From Chiloscyllium plagiosum (taxonomy: Eukaryota), in contig NC_057717.1 in assembly GCF_004010195.1 (NCBI RefSeq), positions 40,788,984 to 40,852,983 on the forward strand: 64,000 nt of DNA. The letters run 5' to 3'. The notes under the pieces were generated by a model that did no database searches, had not been told where the DNA came from, and saw only the letters and a list, made by a program, of their open reading frames with translations. The first letter of the stretch is position 1. Every line of letters begins with the position of its first letter. Positions 36,992 to 63,357 of the stretch are shown piece by piece. The translations under genes were made by a program, and so were the position numbers.

Positions 36992-39790
36992 GGTAGAACA
37001 TAGAACAATACAGCACAGAACAGGCCCTTCATCCCACGATGTTATGCCGAATATTTGTCCGAGCTGAAGCACCCATCCATGTAACTATCCAATTGCCGCT
37101 GAAAGGTCGCAAATGATTCTGACTCTGCCACTCCCACAGGCAGCGCATTCCATGCCCCACCACTCTCTGGGTAAAGAACCTACCCCTGAAATCCACCCAT
37201 ACCTTCCACTCTTCACCTTAAATTTATGCCCCCTTGTAACACTCTGTTGTACCCGGGGAAAAAGTTTCTGACTGTCTTCTCTATCTATTCCTCTAATCAT
37301 CTTATAAACCTCTATCAAGTTACCCCTCATCATTCGCCGTTCCAATGAGAAAAGGCCTAGCACTCTCAACCTATCCTTGTACGACCTATTCTCCATTCCA
37401 GGCAACATCCTGGTAAATCTTCTCTGCACCCTCTCCAAAGCTTCTACATCTTTCCTAAAGTGAGGCGATCAGAACTGCACACAATACTCCAAATGTGGCC
37501 TTACCAAGGTCCTGTACAGCTATAACATCACTTCACGACTCTTGAATTCAATCCCTCTGTTAATGAACGCTCATACACCATAGGCCTTCTTACAAGCTCT
37601 ATCCACCTGAGTGGCAACTTTCAAAGATCCACGACTACAGACCCCAAGATCCCTCTGCTCCTCCAGCTTACTAAGAACCCTACCGTTAACCCTGTATTCC
37701 GCAATCTTATTTGTCCTTCCAAAGTGGACAACCTCACACTTGACAGGGTTGAACTCCATCTGCCACTCCTCAGCCCAGGTCTGCATCATATCTAAGTCCC
37801 TTTGCAGCTGACAACAGCATCCTCACTATCCACAACTCCACCAATCTTCGTATCATCTGCAAATTTACTGACTCACTCTTCGACTTCCTCTTCCAAGTCA
37901 TTAATAAAAATTACAAACAGCAGAGAACCCAGAACTAATCCCTGTGGAACTCCACGTGTAACTGGGCTCCAGGCTGAATATTTACCATCTACCACCACTC
38001 TCTGACTTCAGCCGGTTAGACAGTTGTCTATCTAACTGGCCAAATTTCCCTCTATGACATGCCTCCTGACTTTCCACATAAACCTACCATGGGGAACCTT
38101 ATCAAATCCCTCACTAAAATCCATGTACACGATATCCACTGATCTACCCTCATCCACATGCTTACTCACCTCCTCAAATAATTCAATAAGACTTGTAAGG
38201 CAAGACCTACCCTTCACAAATCTGTGCTGGCTGTCCCTAATCAAGCAGTGTCTTTCCAGATACTCATAAATCCTATCTCTCACTATCCTTTCCATTGCCT
38301 ACAAGCGAAGTAAGACTAACTGGCCTGTAATTCCCGGGGTTATCCCTATTCCCTTTTTTGAACAGGGGCACAACATTCGCCACTCTCTCGTCCCCTGGTA
38401 CCACCCCCGTCAACAGTGAAGATGAATAGATCATTGCCAACAGTACTGCAATTTCCTCTCTTGCTTCCCACATAATCCGAGGATATATCCTATCAGGCCC
38501 GGGGGACTTGTCTATCCTCAGGTTTTTCAAAATGCCCAACACATCTTCCTTCCGACCATGTATCTCTTCTAGCTTACTAGTCCGTTTCGCACTCTCCTCT
38601 TAAACAATACGGTCCCTCTCGATCGTAAATACTGAAGAAAAGTTTCATTCAAGACCTCTCCTATCTCTTCCGACTCAATACACAGTCTCCCACTACTGTC
38701 CTTGATCGGACCTACCCTCGTTCTCGTCATTCTCATGTTTTTCACATACGCATAAACGGCCTTGGGGTTATCCTTGATCCTACCCGCCAAAGATTTTTCA
38801 TGCCTGCTCTTAGCTCACCTCATCCTTTTCTTCAGCTCCCTTCTGGCTATCCTATGTCCCTCCAACGTTCTGTCTGAACCTTGTTTCCTCAACCTTACGG
38901 AAGCCTCCTTCTTCCTCTTTACAAGACATTCAACCTCCCTCGTCAACCAAGGTTCCCTCACACGACCATCTCTTTCCTGCCTGACAGGTACATACATATC
39001 AAGGACTCGTCGTATCTGTTTCTTGAAAAAGTTCCACATTTCCACGACATCCTTCCATGACGGCCTCTGCTCCCAACTTATGCTCCTCAGATCCTGTCTT
39101 ACAGCATCGTATTTACTCTTCCCCCAGTTGTAGAACCTACCCTGTTGCATGCACCTATCTCTCTCCATAACCAAGGTGAAAGTCACAGAATTGTGATCAC
39201 CATCATCAAAATGTTCACCCACTAACAAGCCCATCACTTGTCCCGGTTCGTTACCAAGTACCAAACCCAATATGGCCTCCGCTCTGGTCGGGCAATCTAC
39301 ATACTGAGTTAGAAAAGCTTCCTGGACACACGGCACAAACACCGCTTCATCCAATCTACTTGATCTAAAGAGCTTCCAATCAATATTTGGGAGTTGAAAT
39401 CGCCCATGACTACGACCCCGTGGCTTCTGCACCTTTCCAAAATCTGTTTCCCAATCTGTTTCTCCACATCTCTGCTGGTATTGGGGTGGCCATTGTAAAC
39501 ACCCAACAAGGTGACTGCTCCTTCCTATTTCTGACGTCAGCCCATACTACCTCCAAAGGCAGATCCCCTCAAACTGCCTTTCTACAGCTATTATAGAATT
39601 TCTAATTAGCAACGCCACACCCCCTCCTTTTTTACCACCCTCCCTAATCTTACTGAAACATCTGTAACCAGGAACCGCCAACAACCATTCCTGTCCCTCT
39701 TCTATCCACCTTTCCGTGATGGCCACAACATCGTAGTCCCAGGTACCGATCCACGCCTTAAGTTCACCCACCTTATTTCTTATACTCCTT
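36992..39790 (-). mobile_element. 5'-truncated CR1 LINE (near-complete ORF2, frameshifted), same subfamily as 44221-49418
   Basis: Series of ORF2 pieces 37085-39771; 3' end nearly identical to 44221 onward. Confidence 0.95.
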
Positions 39791-40657: not shown

Positions 40658-41008
40658 TTGTTTTATTTATTTTAAAACAAAATGCTTGCAACCATCCTCT
40701 GAAACAGACCTGAAACTACTCAAATTTACTTCCAACGAAGCTATTCAGCAAAACAAATATCCCAAAGATGTGCATATGTCCATGTTTAAGCGTAACATCG
40801 TGTAAATACATGAGCCCATGTATTCGGGCTTTGCAGGTTGATACGATGATCCAGTCTCAGCCTCCAGCAGGACACCAACAGGCGGAAGCTGGAAGCCTGA
40901 CCCTTCCGATAGTCATACAAATCCTGGCCACTGGATTGTCATTCACCACTCCTGCATCGGCTTTGGTTAGAAAGATATTGACAGAACCGTTTCCCACAAG
41001 TTATCAGA

Positions 41009-41057
41009 ATGATCGTGTCGACATTTTTTCTCAGTTTGTTACGGACTTTCTTATCAT
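41009..41057 (+). pseudogene. IGHV: Ig heavy-chain leader exon
   Basis: MIVSTFFLSLLRTFLS plus T|GTGAGA donor; joins in phase to GT-GTC-CAG-TCG (C-V-Q-S). Confidence 0.9.
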
Positions 41058-41185
41058 GTGAGAGTTTTTTGTTCAAGTCTCTCTTTGTTAATGTCTCAAC
41101 GTTAGTCTACCCCAGGATTACAAAAGAATAAGCCATAATTTTGTCTGCATTAATACTCATGGTTTATTTGTTTTCTTTTTTAAAG

Positions 41186-41495
41186 GTGTCCAGTCGGAGA
41201 TTGTTTTGACTCAGCCAGAGGCAGAGACTTTCCATCCAGCAGGCAGCCTTAGACTGACCTGTAAAACCAGCGGCTTCGATCGTAGCAGCAGCTACATGAG
41301 CTGGGTGCGACACGGCTCCGGCCAGGTTCTGGAGTGGCTGGTGAGCAACTATCGTTCAGCCAGCAAGAATTATGCACCAGCGATTAAGGGGCGATTTACT
41401 GCGTCCAAAGACACGACAAACAGCATTTTCGGTTTGGACATGGGGAGCCTGAAGATCGAAGACACCGCTATCGATTACTGTGCAGGAAAGTGAAT
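41186..41495 (+). pseudogene. IGHV: Shark IgM VH exon, probably germline-joined to D1
   Basis: [60 protein letters not shown]; AAAG acceptor ending at 41185. Confidence 0.93.
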
Positions 41496-41533
41496 CAAAG
41501 TGTTATGCATAGTGACATCCGCATACAAAAACC
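41496..41533 (+). other. Recombination signal sequence, 22-bp spacer, heptamer mutated
   Basis: CAAAGTG + 22 nt + ACAAAAACC. Confidence 0.9.
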
Positions 41534-41835
41534 ACTGACAAGGTTTTATCTCAAGTTGGTGATTGTTGTCCATGGCAGGAACGAGAAATAATGTGAGATG
41601 CAATTTAAATGCAATCCAGTAGTGCTAGTTTGTACAAATGTATAATTATTTCTACCTCCATCGTGCTGATTGCCAAATGAAATGCAGACCGAACCTGTGA
41701 AAGCAATCCAAGCTTTCAAAATACAATGAATAGTAAAATCTGAAATAATGCACTGAATCATTTTAGAGGAGTCTGAATCACTGCTTTCCAGGCAGTGATG
41801 AAATTATCTGCATTTTACAGTTTACAGTCTGTCAT

Positions 41836-41906
41836 AGTATTTGACACAATGTGTCTCACAGTGATATAACTGGAGTGGCACTGCAATTATGACCAATACA
41901 AAAAGC
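41836..41906 (+). other. IGHD: DH segment ATATAACTGGAGTGG (41864-41878) flanked by 12/12 RSSs (D2 type)
   Basis: AGTATTTGA-12-CACAGTG [D] CACTGCA-12-ACAAAAAGC. Confidence 0.88.
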
Positions 41907-42263
41907 TATCAGCCTCCATTGTGTGAAACTAGTCAGTGATTAGTTCTATAAACCGTCTTAACTTGCAGTGCACAATTAGTTCTGTGGTGTTTTATGCTAG
42001 TATCACTATTTAATTTGTACAAATTGCGATAATTATTGATACACCAGTTGGGAATTTTGAGAATCATCTCGTGTTACTCTGTGAAGTTTAACACAATATA
42101 TAAATTTATCAAGAATGATCAGAATTCACTAGCGAAATTATGCGATGAAGATTTAACGTGACTTTATTTTGCCTGTGTTTCTGAAAAATTAAAATAATGG
42201 TAGATTTTTGTTCTATGCAGAGCTAGTTATTATGTGACCCAGTACAGAGAACTTAACAGTGTG

Positions 42264-42311
42264 ACGATCTTGGTTACTGGGGCCAAGGGACCGTGGTGAC
42301 TGTGACTTCAG
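42264..42311 (+). other. IGHJ: JH segment
   Basis: DLGYWGQGTVVTVTS plus G|GTAAG; heptamer CAGTGTG at 42257-42263; nonamer degenerate at ~42225-42235. Confidence 0.95.
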
Positions 42312-42834
42312 GTAAGACCCTAGAACTTTCTTTGTGACTTTTTAAAAACTTTCTATTCATGTAACTAATTTCTGACTGAAATGAAACGCAGATTCTTTGC
42401 TGAATTTGGTTTGGTTCGGATTGAGTTTTGTTCACACTGATTTTTGACTTTCAGTTAAGGCGCAACAAATAGTTAAAATGTTGATGATGGAGTCAGTTGC
42501 TCGGTGTATCTTTTATTGATCAGATGGGCATTCTGTATGGCTGGGTAACTTGAAACACCTAATGTCTCTTAATCAGTCAGGTGTAAATAATGTATAGTAT
42601 CAGTGACACCCTGACTGTGAGTTTTATTATCAACAACAAATGTTAAGAATTTAAAGATGTTCGAAATATTGCCAAACATGATTAAAATATGCTAAAATAT
42701 CATTATTCATTTCTTGAATATATTCCCGTATACATAATGTTCTTACCACGATTATATTTTCTCATTTATTTCGTTAATATTGTTGATGACAGGCAGGATA
42801 GAAACTGTCATAAAGTTTTTCTGCGGTGCTATAT

Positions 42835-43429: not shown

Positions 43430-43574
43430 GACTTCAATTTGGGATTGTTTTTGTGAAGTTACATCATGTTCTTGGTTGTGTTGAAAATGTATGCAGAGCT
43501 AGTTCTGCTGCCAACACATAGTGTTGTGATTTGATGATCTTTGCTCTGTTGAGAAGGGACTGTGCTGGGGTAAC
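43430..43574 (+). pseudogene. Probable relic second JH (duplicate of 42160-42306)
   Basis: Shared 15-mer TATGCAGAGCTAGTT; J-like core ATGATCTTTG..AAGGGACTGTGCTG. Confidence 0.5.
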
Positions 43575-44295
43575 ATTTAATTTGTTATATTTGGGAAACA
43601 GTTTCTGGTTTCTACTTTGTTTTTGCACTGTTAACATGGTTCGTGACAGTGAACCGCTGCAGGTTCCTCATTCAATGCAATCAGAATGCGATTTGAAATT
43701 TCATAAAGCCTAATATTAATTGAAAGGCAAATCGCAAAGAATTTGGAAATGAAGGAAAACCAGATACCTTCGGGTGCAATCTTTACTTAGAAGTAATAAT
43801 TAAGGATTAATCTAATCCACGCTTTACAATCCAAATTCAGAACTCAACTATCTAGTTAATTCACAAGGTCTGTCTTTAAAACAGTTTACAAGTCATAGAG
43901 AGATATAAATAGAATTTCAAAAGTATAATGTTCTATTAGTTCTTGCTCTTGAGCAAAAAAATGCCATGACTGTATTATAATTGATCAAGAAACACCTTTC
44001 CCTTCCACTGCATACTACATATAATTTCTCTGGCTGGAAAAGGTCATTGGCAAAGACCATTTGGAAATTCTGCTCGATTCGATGAAGAACAGATCAGTTT
44101 CACTGCTTTGATCGTTTTCACAAGGAACTTGAGTTAATTAATGTTATGTCCCTGATTAAACTGGATTCGCAGGATAAAAATAAAACATTAACTGAATTAT
44201 TCAATCTGCACACTGTTTTAGGTAGAACATAGAAGATAGAACAATACAGCACAGAACAGGCCCTTCGGCCCACGATGCTGTGCCGAACATTTGTC

Positions 44296-47244
44296 CTAGC
44301 TTAAGCACCCATCCATGTACCTATCCAATTGCCGCTTAAAGGTCACCAAAGATTCTGAATCGACCACTCCCACAGGCAGCGCTTTCCATGCCCCCACCAC
44401 TCTCTGGGTAAAGAACCAACCCCTGACATCTCCCCTATACCTTCCACCCTTCACCTTAAATTTATGTCCCCTTGTAACAATCTGTTGTACCCGGGGAAAA
44501 CGTTTCTGACTGTCTACTCCATCAATTCCTCTGATCATTTTATAAACCTCTACCAAGTCACTCCTCATCCTTCGCCGTTCCAATGAGAAAAGGCCTAGCA
44601 CTCTCAACCTATCCTCGTATGACCTCTTCTCCATTCCAGGCAACATCCTGGTAAATCTTCTCTGCACCCTCTCCAAAGCTTCCACATCTTTCCTCAAGTG
44701 AGGCGACCAGAACTGCACACAGTACTCCAAATGTGGCCTAACCAAAGTCCTGTACAGTTGCAACATCACTTCACGACTCTTGAATTCAATCCCTCTGCTA
44801 ATGAACGATAATACTCCATAGGCCTTCTTACAAACTCTATCCACCTGAGTGGCAACCTCCAAAGATCTATGTACATAGACCCCAAGATCCCTCTGTTCCT
44901 CAACCTCACTAAGAACCCTACCATTAACCCTGAATTCCGCATTCTTATTTGTTCTTCCAAAATGGACAACCTCACACTTGGCAGGATTGAACTCCATCTG
45001 CCACTCCTCAGCCCAGCTCTGCATCATATCTAAGTCCCTCTGCAGCCGACAACAGCCCTCCTCACTGTCCACAACTCCACCTATCTTCGTATCATCTGCA
45101 AATTTACTGACCCACCCTTCGACTCCCTCATCTAAGTCATTAATAAAAATTACAAACAGCAGAGGACCCAGAACTGATCCCTGCGGAACTCCACTTGTAA
45201 CTGGGCTCCAGGCTGAATATTTACCATCTACCACCACTCTCTGCCTTCGACCGGTTAGCCAGTTTTCTATCCAATTGGCCAAATCTCCCTCTATCCCATG
45301 CCTCCTGACCTTCCGCATAAGCCTACCATGGGGAACCTTATCAAATGCCTGACGAAAATCCATGTATACTGCTCTACCCTCATCCACATGCTTGGTCACC
45401 TCCTCGAAGAATTCAATAAGACTTGTAAGGCAAGACCTACCCTCCACAAATCCGTGCTGGCTGTCCCTAATCAAGCAGCGTCTTTCCAGAAACTCATAAA
45501 TCCTATCCCTCAGTACCCTTTCCATTACTTTACCTACCACCAAAGTAAGACTAACTGGCCTGTAATTCCCGAGGTTATCCCTATTCCCTTTTTTGAACAG
45601 AGGCACAACATTCGCTACTCTCCAGTCCCCTGGTACCACCCCCGTTGACAATGAANNNNNNNNNNNNNNNNNNNNNNNNNNNNNNNNNNNNNNNNNNNNN
45701 NNNNNNNNNNNNNNNNNNNNNNNNNNNNNNNNNNNNNNNNNNNNNNNNNNNNNNNNNNNNNNNNNNNNNNNNNNNNNNNNNNNNNNNNNNNNNNNNNNNN
45801 NNNNNNNNNNNNNNNNNNNNNNNNNNNNNNNNNNNNNNNNNNNNNNNNNNNNNNNNNNNNNNNNNNNNNNNNNNNNNNNNNNNNNNNNNNNNNNNNNNNN
45901 NNNNNNNNNNNNNNNNNNNNNNNNNNNNNNNNNNNNNNNNNNNNNNNNNNNNNNNNNNNNNNNNNNNNNNNNNNNNNNNNNNNNNNNNNNNNNNNNNNNN
46001 NNNNNNNNNNNNNNNNNNNNNNNNNNNNNNNNNNNNNNNNNNNNNNNNNNNNNNNNNNNNNNNNNNNNNNNNNNNNNNNNNNNNNNNNNNNNNNNNNNNN
46101 NNNNNNNNNNNNNNNNNNNNNNNNNNNNNNNNNNNNNNNNNNNNNNNNNNNNNNNNNNNNNNNNNNNNNNNNNNNNNNNNNNNNNNNNNNNNNNNNNNNN
46201 NNNNNNNNNNNNNNNNNNNNNNNNNNNNNNNNNNNNNNNNNNNNNNNNNNNNNNNNNNNNNNNNNNNNNNNNNNNNNNNNNNNNNNNNNNNNNNNNNNNN
46301 NNNNNNNNNNNNNNNNNNNNNNNNNNNNNNNNNNNNNNNNNNNNNNNNNNNNNNNNNNNNNNNNNNNNNNNNNNNNNNNNNNNNNNNNNNNNNNNNNNNN
46401 NNNNNNNNNNNNNNNNNNNNNNNNNNNNNNNNNNNNNNNNNNNNNNNNNNNNNNNNNNNNNNNNNNNNNNNNNNNNNNNNNNNNNNNNNNNNNNNNNNNN
46501 NNNNNNNNNNNNNNNNNNNNNNNNNNNNNNNNNNNNNNNNNNNNNNNNNNNNNNNNNNNNNNNNNNNNNNNNNNNNNNNNNNNNNNNNNNNNNNNNNNNN
46601 NNNNNNNNNNNNNNNNNNNNNNNNNNNNNNNNNNNNNNNTTACCCTTTCCCCAATTGTAAAACCTACCCTGTTGCATGCGCCTATCTCTCTCCATAACCA
46701 AGGTGAAAGTCACAGAATTGTGGTCACCATCACCAAAATGTTCATCCACTAACAAGCCCATCACTTGTCCCGGTTCGTTACCAAGTACCACATCCAATAT
46801 GGCCTCCCCTCTGGTTGGACAATCTACATACTGCGTTAGAAACGCTTCCTGGACACACTGCACAAACACCGCCCCATCCAATCTACTTGATCTACAGAGC
46901 TTCCAATCAATATTTGGGAAGTTGAAATCGCCCATTACTACTACCCTGTGGCTTCTGCACCTTTCCAAAATCTGTTTCTCCACATCTCTGCTGCTATTGG
47001 GGGGCCTATAGTAAACACCCAACAAGGTGACTGCACCTTTCCTATTTCTGACTTCAGCCCATACTATCGCTAAAGGCAGATCCCCCTCGAACTGCCTTTC
47101 TGCAGCTGTTATACCATTTCTAATTAGCAACGCCACCCCCCCTCCTTTTTTACCACTCTCCCTCATCCTACTGAAACATCTGTCACCAGGAACCTCCAAC
47201 AACCATTCCTGTCCCTCTTCTATCCACGTTTCCGTGATGGCCAC
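44296..47244 (-). CDS. CR1 ORF2, APE endonuclease plus reverse transcriptase (middle lies in the gap; true start slightly upstream)
   Basis: AITETW, GVYYRPP, MGDFNFP, GDHNSV; GVPQGSVLGP, FADDTK. Confidence 0.9.
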   Translation of the reverse strand: MAITETWIEEGQEWLLEVPGDRCFSRMRESGKKGGGVALLIRNGITAAERQFEGDLPLAIVWAEVRNRKGAVTLLGVYYRPPNSSRDVEKQILERCRSHRVVVMGDFNFPNIDWKLCRSSRLDGAVFVQCVQEAFLTQYVDCPTRGEAILDVVLGNEPGQVMGLLVDEHFGDGDHNSVTFTLVMERDRRMQQGRFYNWGKGXXXXXXXXXXXXXXXXXXXXXXXXXXXXXXXXXXXXXXXXXXXXXXXXXXXXXXXXXXXXXXXXXXXXXXXXXXXXXXXXXXXXXXXXXXXXXXXXXXXXXXXXXXXXXXXXXXXXXXXXXXXXXXXXXXXXXXXXXXXXXXXXXXXXXXXXXXXXXXXXXXXXXXXXXXXXXXXXXXXXXXXXXXXXXXXXXXXXXXXXXXXXXXXXXXXXXXXXXXXXXXXXXXXXXXXXXXXXXXXXXXXXXXXXXXXXXXXXXXXXXXXXXXXXXXXXXXXXXXXXXXXXXXXXXXXXXXXXXXXXXXXXXXXXXXXXXXXXXXXXXXXXXXXXXSLSTGVVPGDWRVANVVPLFKKGNRDNLGNYRPVSLTLVVGKVMERVLRDRIYEFLERRCLIRDSQHGFVEGRSCLTSLIEFFEEVTKHVDEGRAVYMDFRQAFDKVPHGRLMRKVRRHGIEGDLANWIENWLTGRRQRVVVDGKYSAWSPVTSGVPQGSVLGPLLFVIFINDLDEGVEGWVSKFADDTKIGGVVDSEEGCCRLQRDLDMMQSWAEEWQMEFNPAKCEVVHFGRTNKNAEFRVNGRVLSEVEEQRDLGVYVHRSLEVATQVDRVCKKAYGVLSFISRGIEFKSREVMLQLYRTLVRPHLEYCVQFWSPHLRKDVEALERVQRRFTRMLPGMEKRSYEDRLRVLGLFSLERRRMRSDLVEVYKMIRGIDGVDSQKRFPRVQQIVTRGHKFKVKGGRYRGDVRGWFFTQRVVGAWKALPVGVVDSESLVTFKRQLDRYMDGCLS
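45656..46639. other. Assembly gap, 984 N
   Basis: Run of N. Confidence 1.
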
Positions 47245-47412
47245 AACATCGTAGTCCCAGGTAACTATCCACGCCTTAAGTTCACCGACCTCATTTCTGA
47301 TACTCCTTGCGTTGAAGTATACGCACTTGAACCCATCTGTGTCCGCAAGTATTCCCTGTCAGTTCTACCTTCTTCACAGCCTCCCCACACACTTGGACAT
47401 CCTGACAAACAG

Positions 47413-48392
47413 CTAGCCTACTTGCTGGACTACAAGTCCGGATCCCATCCCCCTGCCAAATTTGTTTAAACCACCCGGAAGATAGCTAGCAAACCTACCC
47501 CCCAGAATATTGGTGCCCTTCTGGTTCAGGTGCAACCCGTCCTGCTTGTACAGGTCCCAACTTTCCCAGAATGCAGTCCAATTGTCCAAATACCTGAAGC
47601 CCTCCCTCCTACACCATCCATGCAGCCACGTGTTCAACTGCACTCTCTCCCTATTCCTTGCCTCACTGTCACGTGGCACCGGCAACAACCCAGAGATGAC
47701 GACTCTGTCTGTCCTAGCTTTCAGCTTCCAGCCTAACTCCCTGAGCTCTTGAATGACCTCCCCACCTCTCTTCCTACCTATGTCGTTGGTGCCAACGTGT
47801 ACCACGACTTCTGGCTGCACACCCTCCCCCTTAAGGATTCTGAAGACACAGTCCGAGACGTCTCGGACCCTGGCACCCGGGAGGCAACAAACCATCCGAG
47901 AGTCTCGCCCATGCCCACAGAATCGCCTATCCATCCCTCTAACTAGAGAGAGTCTCCTATCACTAGCGCTCTCCTCCTCTCCCCCTTTCCCTTCTGAGTC
48001 TCAGAGCCAGACCTCACGCCACAGACCCGGTCACTGCAGCTTACCCCTGCTCGGCTGTCCCCCCCACCAGTGTCCAAAGCGGTATACCTATTGTTTAGGG
48101 GAATGACTACAGGGGATCCCTGCAGTGCCTGCTTCCTCCCCTTGCCACCTCTAACTGTTACCCACCTGCCTCTGTTCTCTGGCGTAACTATGTCCCTGTA
48201 GCTTCTTTCTATCACCTTCTCAGCCTCTCGAATAATCCTCAGTTCATCCAACTCCAGTTCCAGTTCCCTAACTCGTTCTGTGAGGAGCAGAATCTGACTG
48301 CATTTCCTGCAGATGAAGTCGGCAGGAGTATCAGTGGTCACCCTTACCTCAAACATCCGGCAGGAGGAACATTCCACTGCCTGCGCTGCCAT
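47413..48392 (-). pseudogene. CR1 ORF1 (CxxC..CxxC, coiled coil, SGNH/GDSL esterase), frameshifted at ~47945
   Basis: MAAQAVECSSC..ICRKC; LVIGDSL* then, in another frame, HVGTND and DGLHLN. Confidence 0.88.
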
Positions 48393-48533
48393 TACTCTAC
48401 ACTTCGTCTCCAAAGCAAGAATACTGAGTAGCTTACCTGTGAACTTTAAAGTTAGGTTAGAGGAGCAGGATGGGAGGGAGGCCCTACTATGTAGGGCCAG
48501 GGGTCTAGAACACACCCACTCAAATATCAATCA

Positions 48534-55910: not shown

Positions 55911-56259
55911 AATTTCGATGAATCTGCATTTCCTTGGTTTGTATTTTGTGAAACGTCTCTGCTCTTCACAGCAATCCAATGGAAGCGTCAGTTGGTGAGA
56001 TCTTCAAACAGTTACTGGGGTGGGATCAGGATGTTCTTCTTCCTAAATTATATGGCAATGGTCAAGATCGAGGGCATGTTTCTAAAGAGGGAACCAATGA
56101 TCATGATCAGCAACTGGTAGGAAACAAAAATAAATTCCAGTTATGCTGTAGTTTCAGCGGGAGCATACTGGCAAACGTTTACAGCTGAGGATACATTTGA
56201 GTAACTGATAAGGTCAAATGAACAGAAACTAACATGCTCACTTGGTCATTCGATTGTAG

Positions 56260-56565
56260 AGACACCATCTCCCCCCACGCTTTATGGCCTGGTCTCCTCC
56301 TGTCAGGAGCACAACACCGGTTCTGCAATCTTTGGTTGTTTGGCGATGGACTATTCCCCTGACGTCACGAAGGTAACCTGGAAGAAAGGTGGGGAGCTAA
56401 TCACGACTGGATTGAAGACTTACCCATCAGTGAAAAACAAGAAGGGAACCTACACCCTGAGCAGACAGTTAACCCTGCCTGAGTCAGCGGTAGGTTGCCC
56501 CAGCAAAATCTACTGTGAGGTTCAACACAGCGGGTCACACAAGAGCAAAGAAATGCCATGTCCAG
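56260..56565 (+). pseudogene. IGHM: IgM Cmu1 exon (open frame)
   Basis: TTGTAG|(E)[41 protein letters not shown]|GTACG; 306 nt. Confidence 0.95.
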
Positions 56566-59532: not shown

Positions 59533-59833
59533 ATCTAGGTATTCTCCAACCAACTCTTCTCCTAACTGTGAGCTCCAGTGAAGAAATCGCAAGCAGTAAG
59601 TTTGCAACCGTCGTCTGTTCAATCATCGATTTCCATCCGAAGTCAATCTCCGTGAGTTGGTTGAAAAATAGCCGACGCCTTGATTCTGGCTTCTTCACGT
59701 CTCCCGTGTGTGAGGCGAACGGGAACTTCTCGGTGATGAGTCCCTGATGGTGAATGGTTCAACAGCGCAGTCTATACCTGCCAGGTCACTCATGGAGAGA
59801 ACATTCAAAGTAAAAACATCACCGCACTCCAGG
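59533..59833 (+). pseudogene. IGHM: IgM Cmu2 exon, frameshifted (alternative acceptor at 59506, same phase)
   Basis: [40 protein letters not shown]; continues [17 protein letters not shown] in the +1 frame; donor G|GTAAG at 59834. Confidence 0.92.
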
Positions 59834-62202: not shown

Positions 62203-62510
62203 AAGATACCGAGTGCCACCTAACACCTTTAAAATCCTCCCACCTCCAGTAGAACAAGTCTTACTGGAGGCGACGGTGACGTTAACCTGCGTTGTGTCCA
62301 ATCTTCCTTCTGGAATCAACGTGACCTGTAAACAAGAAGAGAAGCCTCTGAAATCAGAGATTACTGACCAGCCTGGACAGAATCCCGACAGTGTGATCAG
62401 CAAATTAGACATTTCTACTGAAGCCTGGCTGAATGGCGTTACTTTTGGATGTGTGGTGTACCATCAGAATCTACCGACTCCGCTGAGAGACTCCATCCAC
62501 AAGGAGAAAG
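62203..62510 (+). pseudogene. IGHM: IgM Cmu3 exon, 1-nt frameshift near the start and core Trp->Cys
   Basis: CATAG acceptor; [44 protein letters not shown]|GTGAG; 308 nt, not a multiple of 3. Confidence 0.92.
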
Positions 62511-62965
62511 GTGAGCGGTGAGATTAAAACACAAAGCATCCCATGAGTAATCCAGATCCAGTTACAGCAATGGCAGGCTTTGATTGGTAATGAACAAACA
62601 CCATTGGGGGCATTAATGATGCATCTTAAAGCAGGATAGCTAGGTAGCTGATTAAGAAAAAGATGGACCAAAGGATATTGTATTCTGATTAAGTCAGATA
62701 GGGTGGGAGGAAGCCTGGGTTGTGACGTTACAATCAGCAATGACAGTTGGGCAGAATGCCCTTGTTGTGGGCTGGAAACATGGAGGCAACTTTCACATTA
62801 AACTTTACTCCTTTTACTGAACAGAATGTGTATCATACTGCTCCTTTAGAAAACGAAAGTGAATAAATCCCAAATTAAAAATGGCGTATTTTAATATTTA
62901 GTGAAATTGTGATATTGATTCAGGACTTTTTTGGTTGATTTATATTTGACTCAAATATTCTGCAG

Positions 62966-63357
62966 TGATTAATCCGCTGGAGCCATCAGTGTCGGTCCTC
63001 TTGCCACCAACAGAAGAAATCTCCGCTCAGAGGTTTCTCTCCCTCACCTGTTTAGTGAGAGGTTTCTCCCCCCGAGAGATCTTCGTCAAGTGGACAAACA
63101 ATGACAAGCCAGTGAATCCCAGTAACTACAAGAACACCGAGGTGATGGCGGAGAGCGACAACACCTTTTTCTTCATGTACAGCCTGTTATCCATTACAGC
63201 GGAGGAGTGGGTCAGCGGTGCCTCTTACTCCTGGGTGGTGGGACATGAAGCGAGTCCATTGAAGATCATCAACAGAACAGTCGATAAATCCAGCGGTAAA
63301 CCGAGTTTCGTAAACATTTCACTTGCACTGATGGACACTGTTAATTCATGTCAATAA
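62966..63357 (+). pseudogene. IGHM: IgM Cmu4 exon plus secretory tailpiece; second domain Cys->Trp
   Basis: [55 protein letters not shown]; internal TM donor G|GTAAA at 63296. Confidence 0.95.

Follow-up and report, generated by a model that had tools for sequence, protein, structure and literature searches.

The IgM heavy-chain cluster in the 64-kb stretch of DNA analyzed here, referred to as the window, raises the question of whether V became joined to D1, the first D segment, in the germline, and of which segment owns the RSS that now stands behind V. An earlier note on this DNA had read the locus as a half-rearranged IgM cluster, VD1-D2-J. We find this layout, and it likely represents a shark IgM cluster whose V and D1 were fused in the germline through a RAG-type coding joint. 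The cluster is, by its sequence, a pseudogene, so that the half-rearranged state does not imply readiness for use.

Architecture of the IgM cluster

The plus strand of the window carries one complete IgM heavy-chain cluster in the order leader-V...D2...J...Cmu1-4 (Table 1). The leader is present together with a VH of the shark IgM V family: a homologue search with V returned 21 candidates, 19 of them with E<=0.001 (shark IgM-type VH), the top one being a Chiloscyllium punctatum VH that is 77% identical, while horned-shark HV01 is 70% identical. A mu-type constant region lies 3' of the single JH, with C1-set matches in Cmu1, Cmu2 (partial), Cmu3, and Cmu4, and the alignment of Cmu4 and its tail to solved IgM Cmu4 reaches an E-value of 9e-45. 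The J-Cmu1 intron measures ~14 kb and carries a minus-strand LINE reverse-transcriptase ORF.

Table 1. Features of the IgM cluster, in window coordinates
Feature	Position	Strand	Evidence and remarks
Leader exon	41009..41057	+	ATG 41009, splice donor GT 41058; leaders of the V homologues align
V exon with fused V-D1 junction	41186..41495	+	Pfam V-set, E 1.1e-08; Cys codon TGT 41479-41481
Coding joint (putative)	41482..41495	+	GCAGGAAAGTGAAT, 14 nt; ~6 nt V-derived (GCAGGA), at most 8 nt (AAGTGAAT) D1 remnant and/or added letters
D1 3' RSS	41496..41533	+	Heptamer CAAAGTG 41496-41502, 22-nt spacer 41503-41524, nonamer ACAAAAACC 41525-41533
D1-D2 intersegmental DNA, 302 nt	41534..41835	+	Contigs of paralogs and of a related species ~88-91% alike (records 5, 12, 21, 27, 28)
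D2 5' RSS, 12-nt spacer	41836..41863	-	RSS scan; plus-strand order: nonamer AGTATTTGA, spacer, heptamer CACAGTG
D2 coding segment, ATATAACTGGAGTGG	41864..41878	+	12-RSS on both sides
D2 3' RSS	41879..41906	+	RSS scan; heptamer CACTGCA, 12-nt spacer, nonamer ACAAAAAGC
J RSS, 23-nt spacer	42225..42263	-	RSS scan; plus-strand heptamer CAGTGTG, nonamer weak
JH coding segment (…YWGQGTVVTVTS)	42264..42311	+	Splice donor GT 42312; match to nurse-shark JH2 primer
Cmu1 exon, limits approximate	56259..56564	+	Pfam C1-set, E 5e-14; apparently intact
Cmu2 exon, limits approximate	59550..59832	+	Frameshifted; partial C1-set match
Cmu3 exon, limits approximate	62213..62510	+	C1-set match; conserved Trp -> Cys
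Cmu4 exon and secretory tail	62965..63357	+	Second canonical Cys -> Trp

In the two-free-D layout, a D1 with 12/22 RSSs and a D2 with 12/12 RSSs lie between V and J, whereas the window has one free D, flanked 12/12; of D1 there remain the 3' RSS and no more than 8 coding letters. The free D begins 368 nt past the V end, and the J coding segment begins 385 nt after D behind its 23-spacer RSS, in agreement with the ~370 and ~385 bp of the earlier note. The other observations on which that note was built were also recovered, namely, the 14 nt between the FR3 Cys codon and the heptamer, the RSS with a 22-bp spacer behind V, the in-frame TGA at the join (41491-41493, in the V frame), and the lack of any other RSS-flanked D: a lenient scan of 41100-42700 (heptamer at least 4/7, nonamer at least 5/9) revealed no further segment with an RSS on each side between V and J.

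In a strict scan of both strands of the window, which called for a heptamer of at least 6/7, a nonamer of at least 8/9, and a spacer of 12, 22, or 23, the RSS at 41496-41533 was the sole match. The same scan on 30 block shuffles gave a mean of 0.03 matches and a maximum of 1, so that the RSS exceeds what chance would provide. Its heptamer, CAAAGTG, is non-canonical, with an A at the third position on which the earlier note was silent. The consensus heptamer has C at this position, and an A as third base should weaken or abolish RAG cleavage. The 12/23 rule fits both the lost pair (V 23 x D1 5' 12) and the surviving pairs (22 x 12 and 12 x 23).

Assignment of the RSS behind V

Logan contigs from three runs with the same species label (X1, X2, and X3) and one run from a related species (X7) were placed on 40950-42450 with a threshold of at least 80% likeness, to admit paralogous clusters; the findings from them apply among the matches listed. 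Contigs that match the window from 41495 rightwards occur in 4/4 runs. X7 record 27 extends over 41495-41798, with 35 differing letters and 3 gaps; the match is 41495-41644 for both X1 record 4 and X3 record 20. Before 41495, such contigs have loose ends (three in X1, two in X2, two in X3, and one, of 246 nt, in X7, among the matches listed), which fit nothing in 40950-42450 and end with ...CATCATTGTG ATACTACAGTGGG, that is, with a 5' heptamer and a free D1; the last 30 letters of the loose part read TGGTCTACATCATTGTGATACTACAGTGGG. The 12-letter D1 motif occurs once in the text of the horned-shark DH paper (PMC2191167).

On the V side, a paralogous V contig of X2 departs from the window after 41484, for 91 nt, reading AGAGACCACAGCGAGAGGAACCAGGGCTGG. 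This loose end, AGAGAC CACAGCG AGAGGAACCAGGGCTGG, shows an ordinary V end, 9 nt after the Cys, followed by a different RSS with a spacer unlike that of the window. The tail of the read-through protein model P0001, read by eye, corresponds to the translation of a similar V-RSS region. Since homology to the D1-bearing clusters starts at the coding/heptamer border and homology to the V-bearing clusters stops a few letters short of the V coding end, the RSS at 41496-41533 and its 3' flank are assigned to D1, and the identification of this RSS as the D1 3' RSS in the earlier note is upheld by the comparison.

The public-run contigs serve here as stand-ins for unrearranged clusters. Alignment to them places the flank on the D1-D2 side and reveals that the window has lost the V-RSS, the interval between V and D1, the 5' RSS of D1, and some of D1 itself, which is the support that the earlier note had named for its reading. 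Split relatives are present in the same genome, as X1, X2, and X3 contain contigs that carry a free D1 and others that carry V and its RSS.

The nurse-shark primer RSS-D1 is described as targeting "sequence 3' of D1" in the part of Malecek et al. (PMC2435157) drawn on here. Over both strands, it has a single best site in the window at 41509-41526, which lies in the spacer in the expected orientation and matches at 14/18 letters; the runners-up, over both strands of the whole window, are seven sites at 13/18. The nurse-shark JH2 primer matches at 14/16 letters in J (42290-42305). Three other nurse-shark primers, IntDD-F (D1-D2 interval), Int (leader intron), and V18-1 (leader), gave only background in the V-J region, at no more than 12/18.

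The single free D could also be expected of a native one-D cluster, in which there never was a D1 and the RSS would be V's own, with a 22-nt spacer. This reading is hardly credible in view of the free-D1 paralog contigs, which align to the RSS and flank from the heptamer border, of the quite different RSS of paralogous V segments, of the spacer match to the nurse-shark D1 3' primer, and of a coding end that lies 14 nt after the Cys in the window and 9 nt after it in paralogous V.

The remaining free D is identified as D2, since the tails of the protein models P0002 and P0009 from Chiloscyllium punctatum and P0006 from Scyliorhinus torazame, read by eye, resemble the translated D2 3' RSS and its flank. 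The tail of P0009 (...ALQL), again read by eye on the protein, is compatible with the D2 3' heptamer CACTGCA. The joints of joined paralogs end at D2 within 41871-41879, and those of D2-J and VDJ-joined paralogs enter J at 42263-42269. In an X3 contig, the spliced loose end 3' of 42311 is the start of Cmu1.

The V-D1 joint

At the junction, one RSS pair and the DNA between its two members are gone, and V and D1 coding sequence now meet where the heptamers used to begin. On the V side, the window keeps GCAGGA, where paralogs read GCAAGA and then GAC; the V coding end is ~3 nt shorter and D1 is ~6 nt shorter than in the paralogs. The following letters, AAGTGAAT, agree at 5/8 positions with the paralog D1 end CAGTGGGT (CAGTGGG plus the T at 41495). 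Of the 8-nt D1 remnant proposed in the earlier note, only five letters are those of the paralog D1 end. As the other three differ, the assignment of the junction letters is uncertain, and the last eight may be a D1 remnant, added letters, or the outcome of later mutation.

The complete loss of both signals, together with a D1 3' RSS that is intact from the first letter of its heptamer, is what a coding joint made by RAG looks like. In the proposed sequence of events, the V 23-RSS and the D1 5' 12-RSS would have been cut, and the ~350-400 bp between the signals, both signals, and a few coding letters would have been lost. The trimmed V end would then have been ligated to the trimmed D1 end, which would leave the D1 3' end, the 22-spacer RSS, and the D1-D2 interval in place and yield VD1-D2-J. 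The germline V-D1 join by RAG claimed in the earlier note is supported: the segments missing from the window and the retained D1 RSS and flank are observed, and we infer that RAG made the joint and that it did so in a germ cell.

An ordinary deletion of ~400 bp, arising without RAG by replication slippage or end joining, might instead have taken the V-RSS through the 5' part of D1. It would suit a pseudogene in decay, where further indels are seen (the Cmu2 frameshift is one), and junction letters whose assignment is uncertain. However, both ends lie within a few letters of the heptamer/coding borders, both signals are fully lost, and the D1 3' RSS is untouched; two random ends would rarely land at both borders, and we consider such a deletion very unlikely.

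Germline or somatic origin of the joined state

Whether the join is germline or somatic matters because nurse-shark somatic cells commonly produce VD-D-J in one step. In the window, the joined state is part of the assembly consensus. The contig X3 record 19, with a length of 168 nt and a depth of 44, extends across 41434-41602 without a break; it differs at 17 letters and has 1 gap, which matching depths place at 41565, where the paralogs are also without the letter. As this gap falls outside the junction, a ~90%-alike copy has a junction of equal length. X3 contains RNA, as indicated by a spliced J-Cmu1 contig and by a depth over the V exon that is tens of times the intergenic depth, and record 19 could be a transcript rather than genomic DNA.

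Among the matches listed, the independent runs gave no contig of the exact locus (at least 99% alike) across the junction. A perfect contig, X1 record 2, covers 41252-41463 and ends short of it. At position 41469, the window has T and every placed contig of all four runs, among the matches listed, has C. Near-perfect contigs of the locus itself cover J and the beginning of the intron in X2 (42148-42450, 1 other letter) and X3 (42157-42450, 0 other letters); should X2 and X3 consist of RNA, transcription of the dead cluster may continue. The evidence that the joined state is probably inherited consists of the assembly and one ~90%-alike contig that spans a junction of equal length.

A somatic VD-D-J intermediate, produced by a V-D1 join in a lymphocyte or thymocyte, might have entered the assembly consensus. 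The frequency of VD-D-J as a one-step product in nurse-shark lymphocytes and thymocytes, given in the part of PMC2435157 drawn on here, agrees with this possibility, as does the lack, among the matches listed for the independent runs, of an own-locus contig over the junction. We nevertheless regard it as unlikely, because somatic junctions differ between cells and should not prevail in a consensus, and because the contig with an equal-length junction, ~90% alike, comes from another sample at a depth of 44. In the same part of the nurse-shark study, Southern blots showed no rearrangement of pseudogene clusters (PMC2435157).

IgM clusters are numerous and resemble one another, and the perfect X1 contig stops just before the junction, as might be seen if the V of one cluster had been joined to the D1 flank of another during assembly. 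Such an error, however, needs sequence shared at the seam, and the seam here coincides with recombination borders and has unique letters. In three samples, contigs that are perfect or nearly so lie on both sides of it (X1 on the V side, X2 and X3 on the J side), and a related contig spans the equivalent junction, which makes mis-assembly extremely unlikely.

Pseudogene status of the cluster

The cluster lacks the full set of open frames, canonical Cys and Trp residues, and usable RSSs that a functional IgM gene would have. The Cmu2 frame halts at a TGA (59745-59747), and the remainder of the domain, with the second Cys motif (…YTCQVTH…), continues in another frame from 59740; the C1-set match breaks off at position 62 of the 86 in the profile, immediately ahead of this stop. 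In Cmu3, a Cys (TGT, 62327-62329) stands opposite the conserved W when the domain is aligned with a solved Ig heavy chain. In Cmu4, alignment to solved IgM Cmu4 (8r83_B and 7k0c_A) puts a Trp (TGG, 63232-63234) opposite the C of YTCVV. With the frameshift in Cmu2, the residue losses in Cmu3 and Cmu4, the TGA in the junction, and the CAA heptamer, no normal mu chain is possible. Judging from these lesions, the cluster is a pseudogene, which the earlier note had missed. Decay of the V domain was considered as further evidence and dropped: V deviates at 4/41 conserved columns, within the range of 13 controls (1-9 of 41-49).

The cluster is best seen as a fossil left by a single germline recombination step and not as a working pre-rearranged gene.

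Relation to other joined antigen-receptor genes

Germline joining, partial (VD-J, VD-DJ) or complete (VDJ), affects many clusters of sharks and skates, and the joined genes arise from split genes via RAG in germ cells, according to the portions of two publications used here (PMC5192425 and PMC2193156). The cluster in the window is another case of these long-known partly joined germline clusters. Like the germline-joined IgM clusters described for horned shark and skates in those portions, it has coding segments fused where RSS pairs stood, and split relatives in the same genome. It differs from them in having the V-D1 join alone, with D2 and J still split, and in being a pseudogene. VD-D-J is not among the states VD-J, VD-DJ, and VDJ that the reviews give in these portions (PMC5192425, PMC2193156). 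A literature search for VD-D-J in shark returned only the somatic nurse-shark study, and no genome-wide catalogue naming a germline VD-D-J state came up in further searches.

The closest likeness in layout is to the somatic VD-D-J of nurse-shark Group 2 IgM genes, where, in the part of PMC2435157 drawn on here, V and D1 are joined, the D1 3' RSS is kept, and D2 and J are unjoined. The nurse-shark products are made in single lymphocytes or thymocytes, whereas the state in the window is found in an assembly, with dead constant exons and a related junction of equal length. Germline VDD-J genes are represented by P0002, P0009, and P0006, which belong to the same family and have the same D2 3' 12-RSS and flank; they carry two joins (V-D1-D2) and the window carries one.

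Chicken VH pseudogenes are not known to have an RSS, a leader, or a C gene of their own, and they act as gene-conversion donors. Unlike them, the window has a full cluster with its downstream RSS pairs intact, and no donor role is shown for it. Both are V-D fused pseudogenes, and the chicken ones are read as germline RAG products in the portion of PMC2193156 used here.

Further joined paralogs appear among the contigs. A paralogous VDD-J joint (41482 to 41878) is represented by the identical 26 letters in X1, X2, and X3, and these letters, translated by hand, give the CGVYYSNWAV of C. punctatum P0009. Since the CDR3 of this junction equals that of P0009, the paralogous VDD-J gene is shared between species or very close relatives. 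X7 contains a second VDD-J joint and a VDJ joint, and X3 contains D2-J joints. More tentatively, and with rather more doubt than confidence, the cluster could be viewed as belonging to a small VD1-joined family, which would have been duplicated after a single germline RAG cut-and-join and in which some sisters would later have undergone D2-J joining in the germline; V-D-D-J, VD-D-J, and VD-DJ would then form a stepwise series recording the order and frequency of germline RAG hits, with a germline VD-D-J state as yet undescribed in print.

Germline-joined shark antibody genes are standing evidence that RAG acts in germ cells and reshapes antigen-receptor loci over evolution. A cluster halted after the first of three joins, with the other RSS pairs in place, suggests that germline events can be single cuts and not full VDJ assemblies, and, if sister copies share the junction, the joins could be ordered and dated. 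A single dead gene leaves the understanding of shark antibodies unchanged; its value is that of a data point for a genome-wide catalogue of joined clusters.

Other elements around the cluster

The exact consensus promoter octamer, ATGCAAAT, is absent upstream of the leader. The sole octamer-like site 5' of the leader is ATACAAAT at 40915-40922, with one mismatch, ~87 nt upstream of the ATG. It was rejected as a promoter octamer, being at chance level: the window contains 88 one-mismatch sites against 90 expected.

A decayed duplicate of the J region lies at 43430-43590, ~1.2 kb 3' of JH. Aligned with 42195-42330, it shows 70% column identity, has a 33-nt insert after its nonamer-like run, and is without a splice-ready end. 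A good nonamer-like run, GATTTTTGT, is found at 42203-42211, 45 nt 5' of the J heptamer and too distant to serve J. Small insertions are present around it in paralog contigs, TTTGA behind 42206 in X2, X3, and X7 and 8 nt behind 42213 in X1.

The LINE-type element in the J-Cmu1 intron occupies 44296-48530 on the minus strand, with an N gap at 45656-46639. Its endonuclease/reverse-transcriptase ORF spans 982 codons including the gap and is accompanied by two upstream ORFs; the element helps to lengthen the intron to its present size. Pieces of similar LINE elements are found at 37085-39432.
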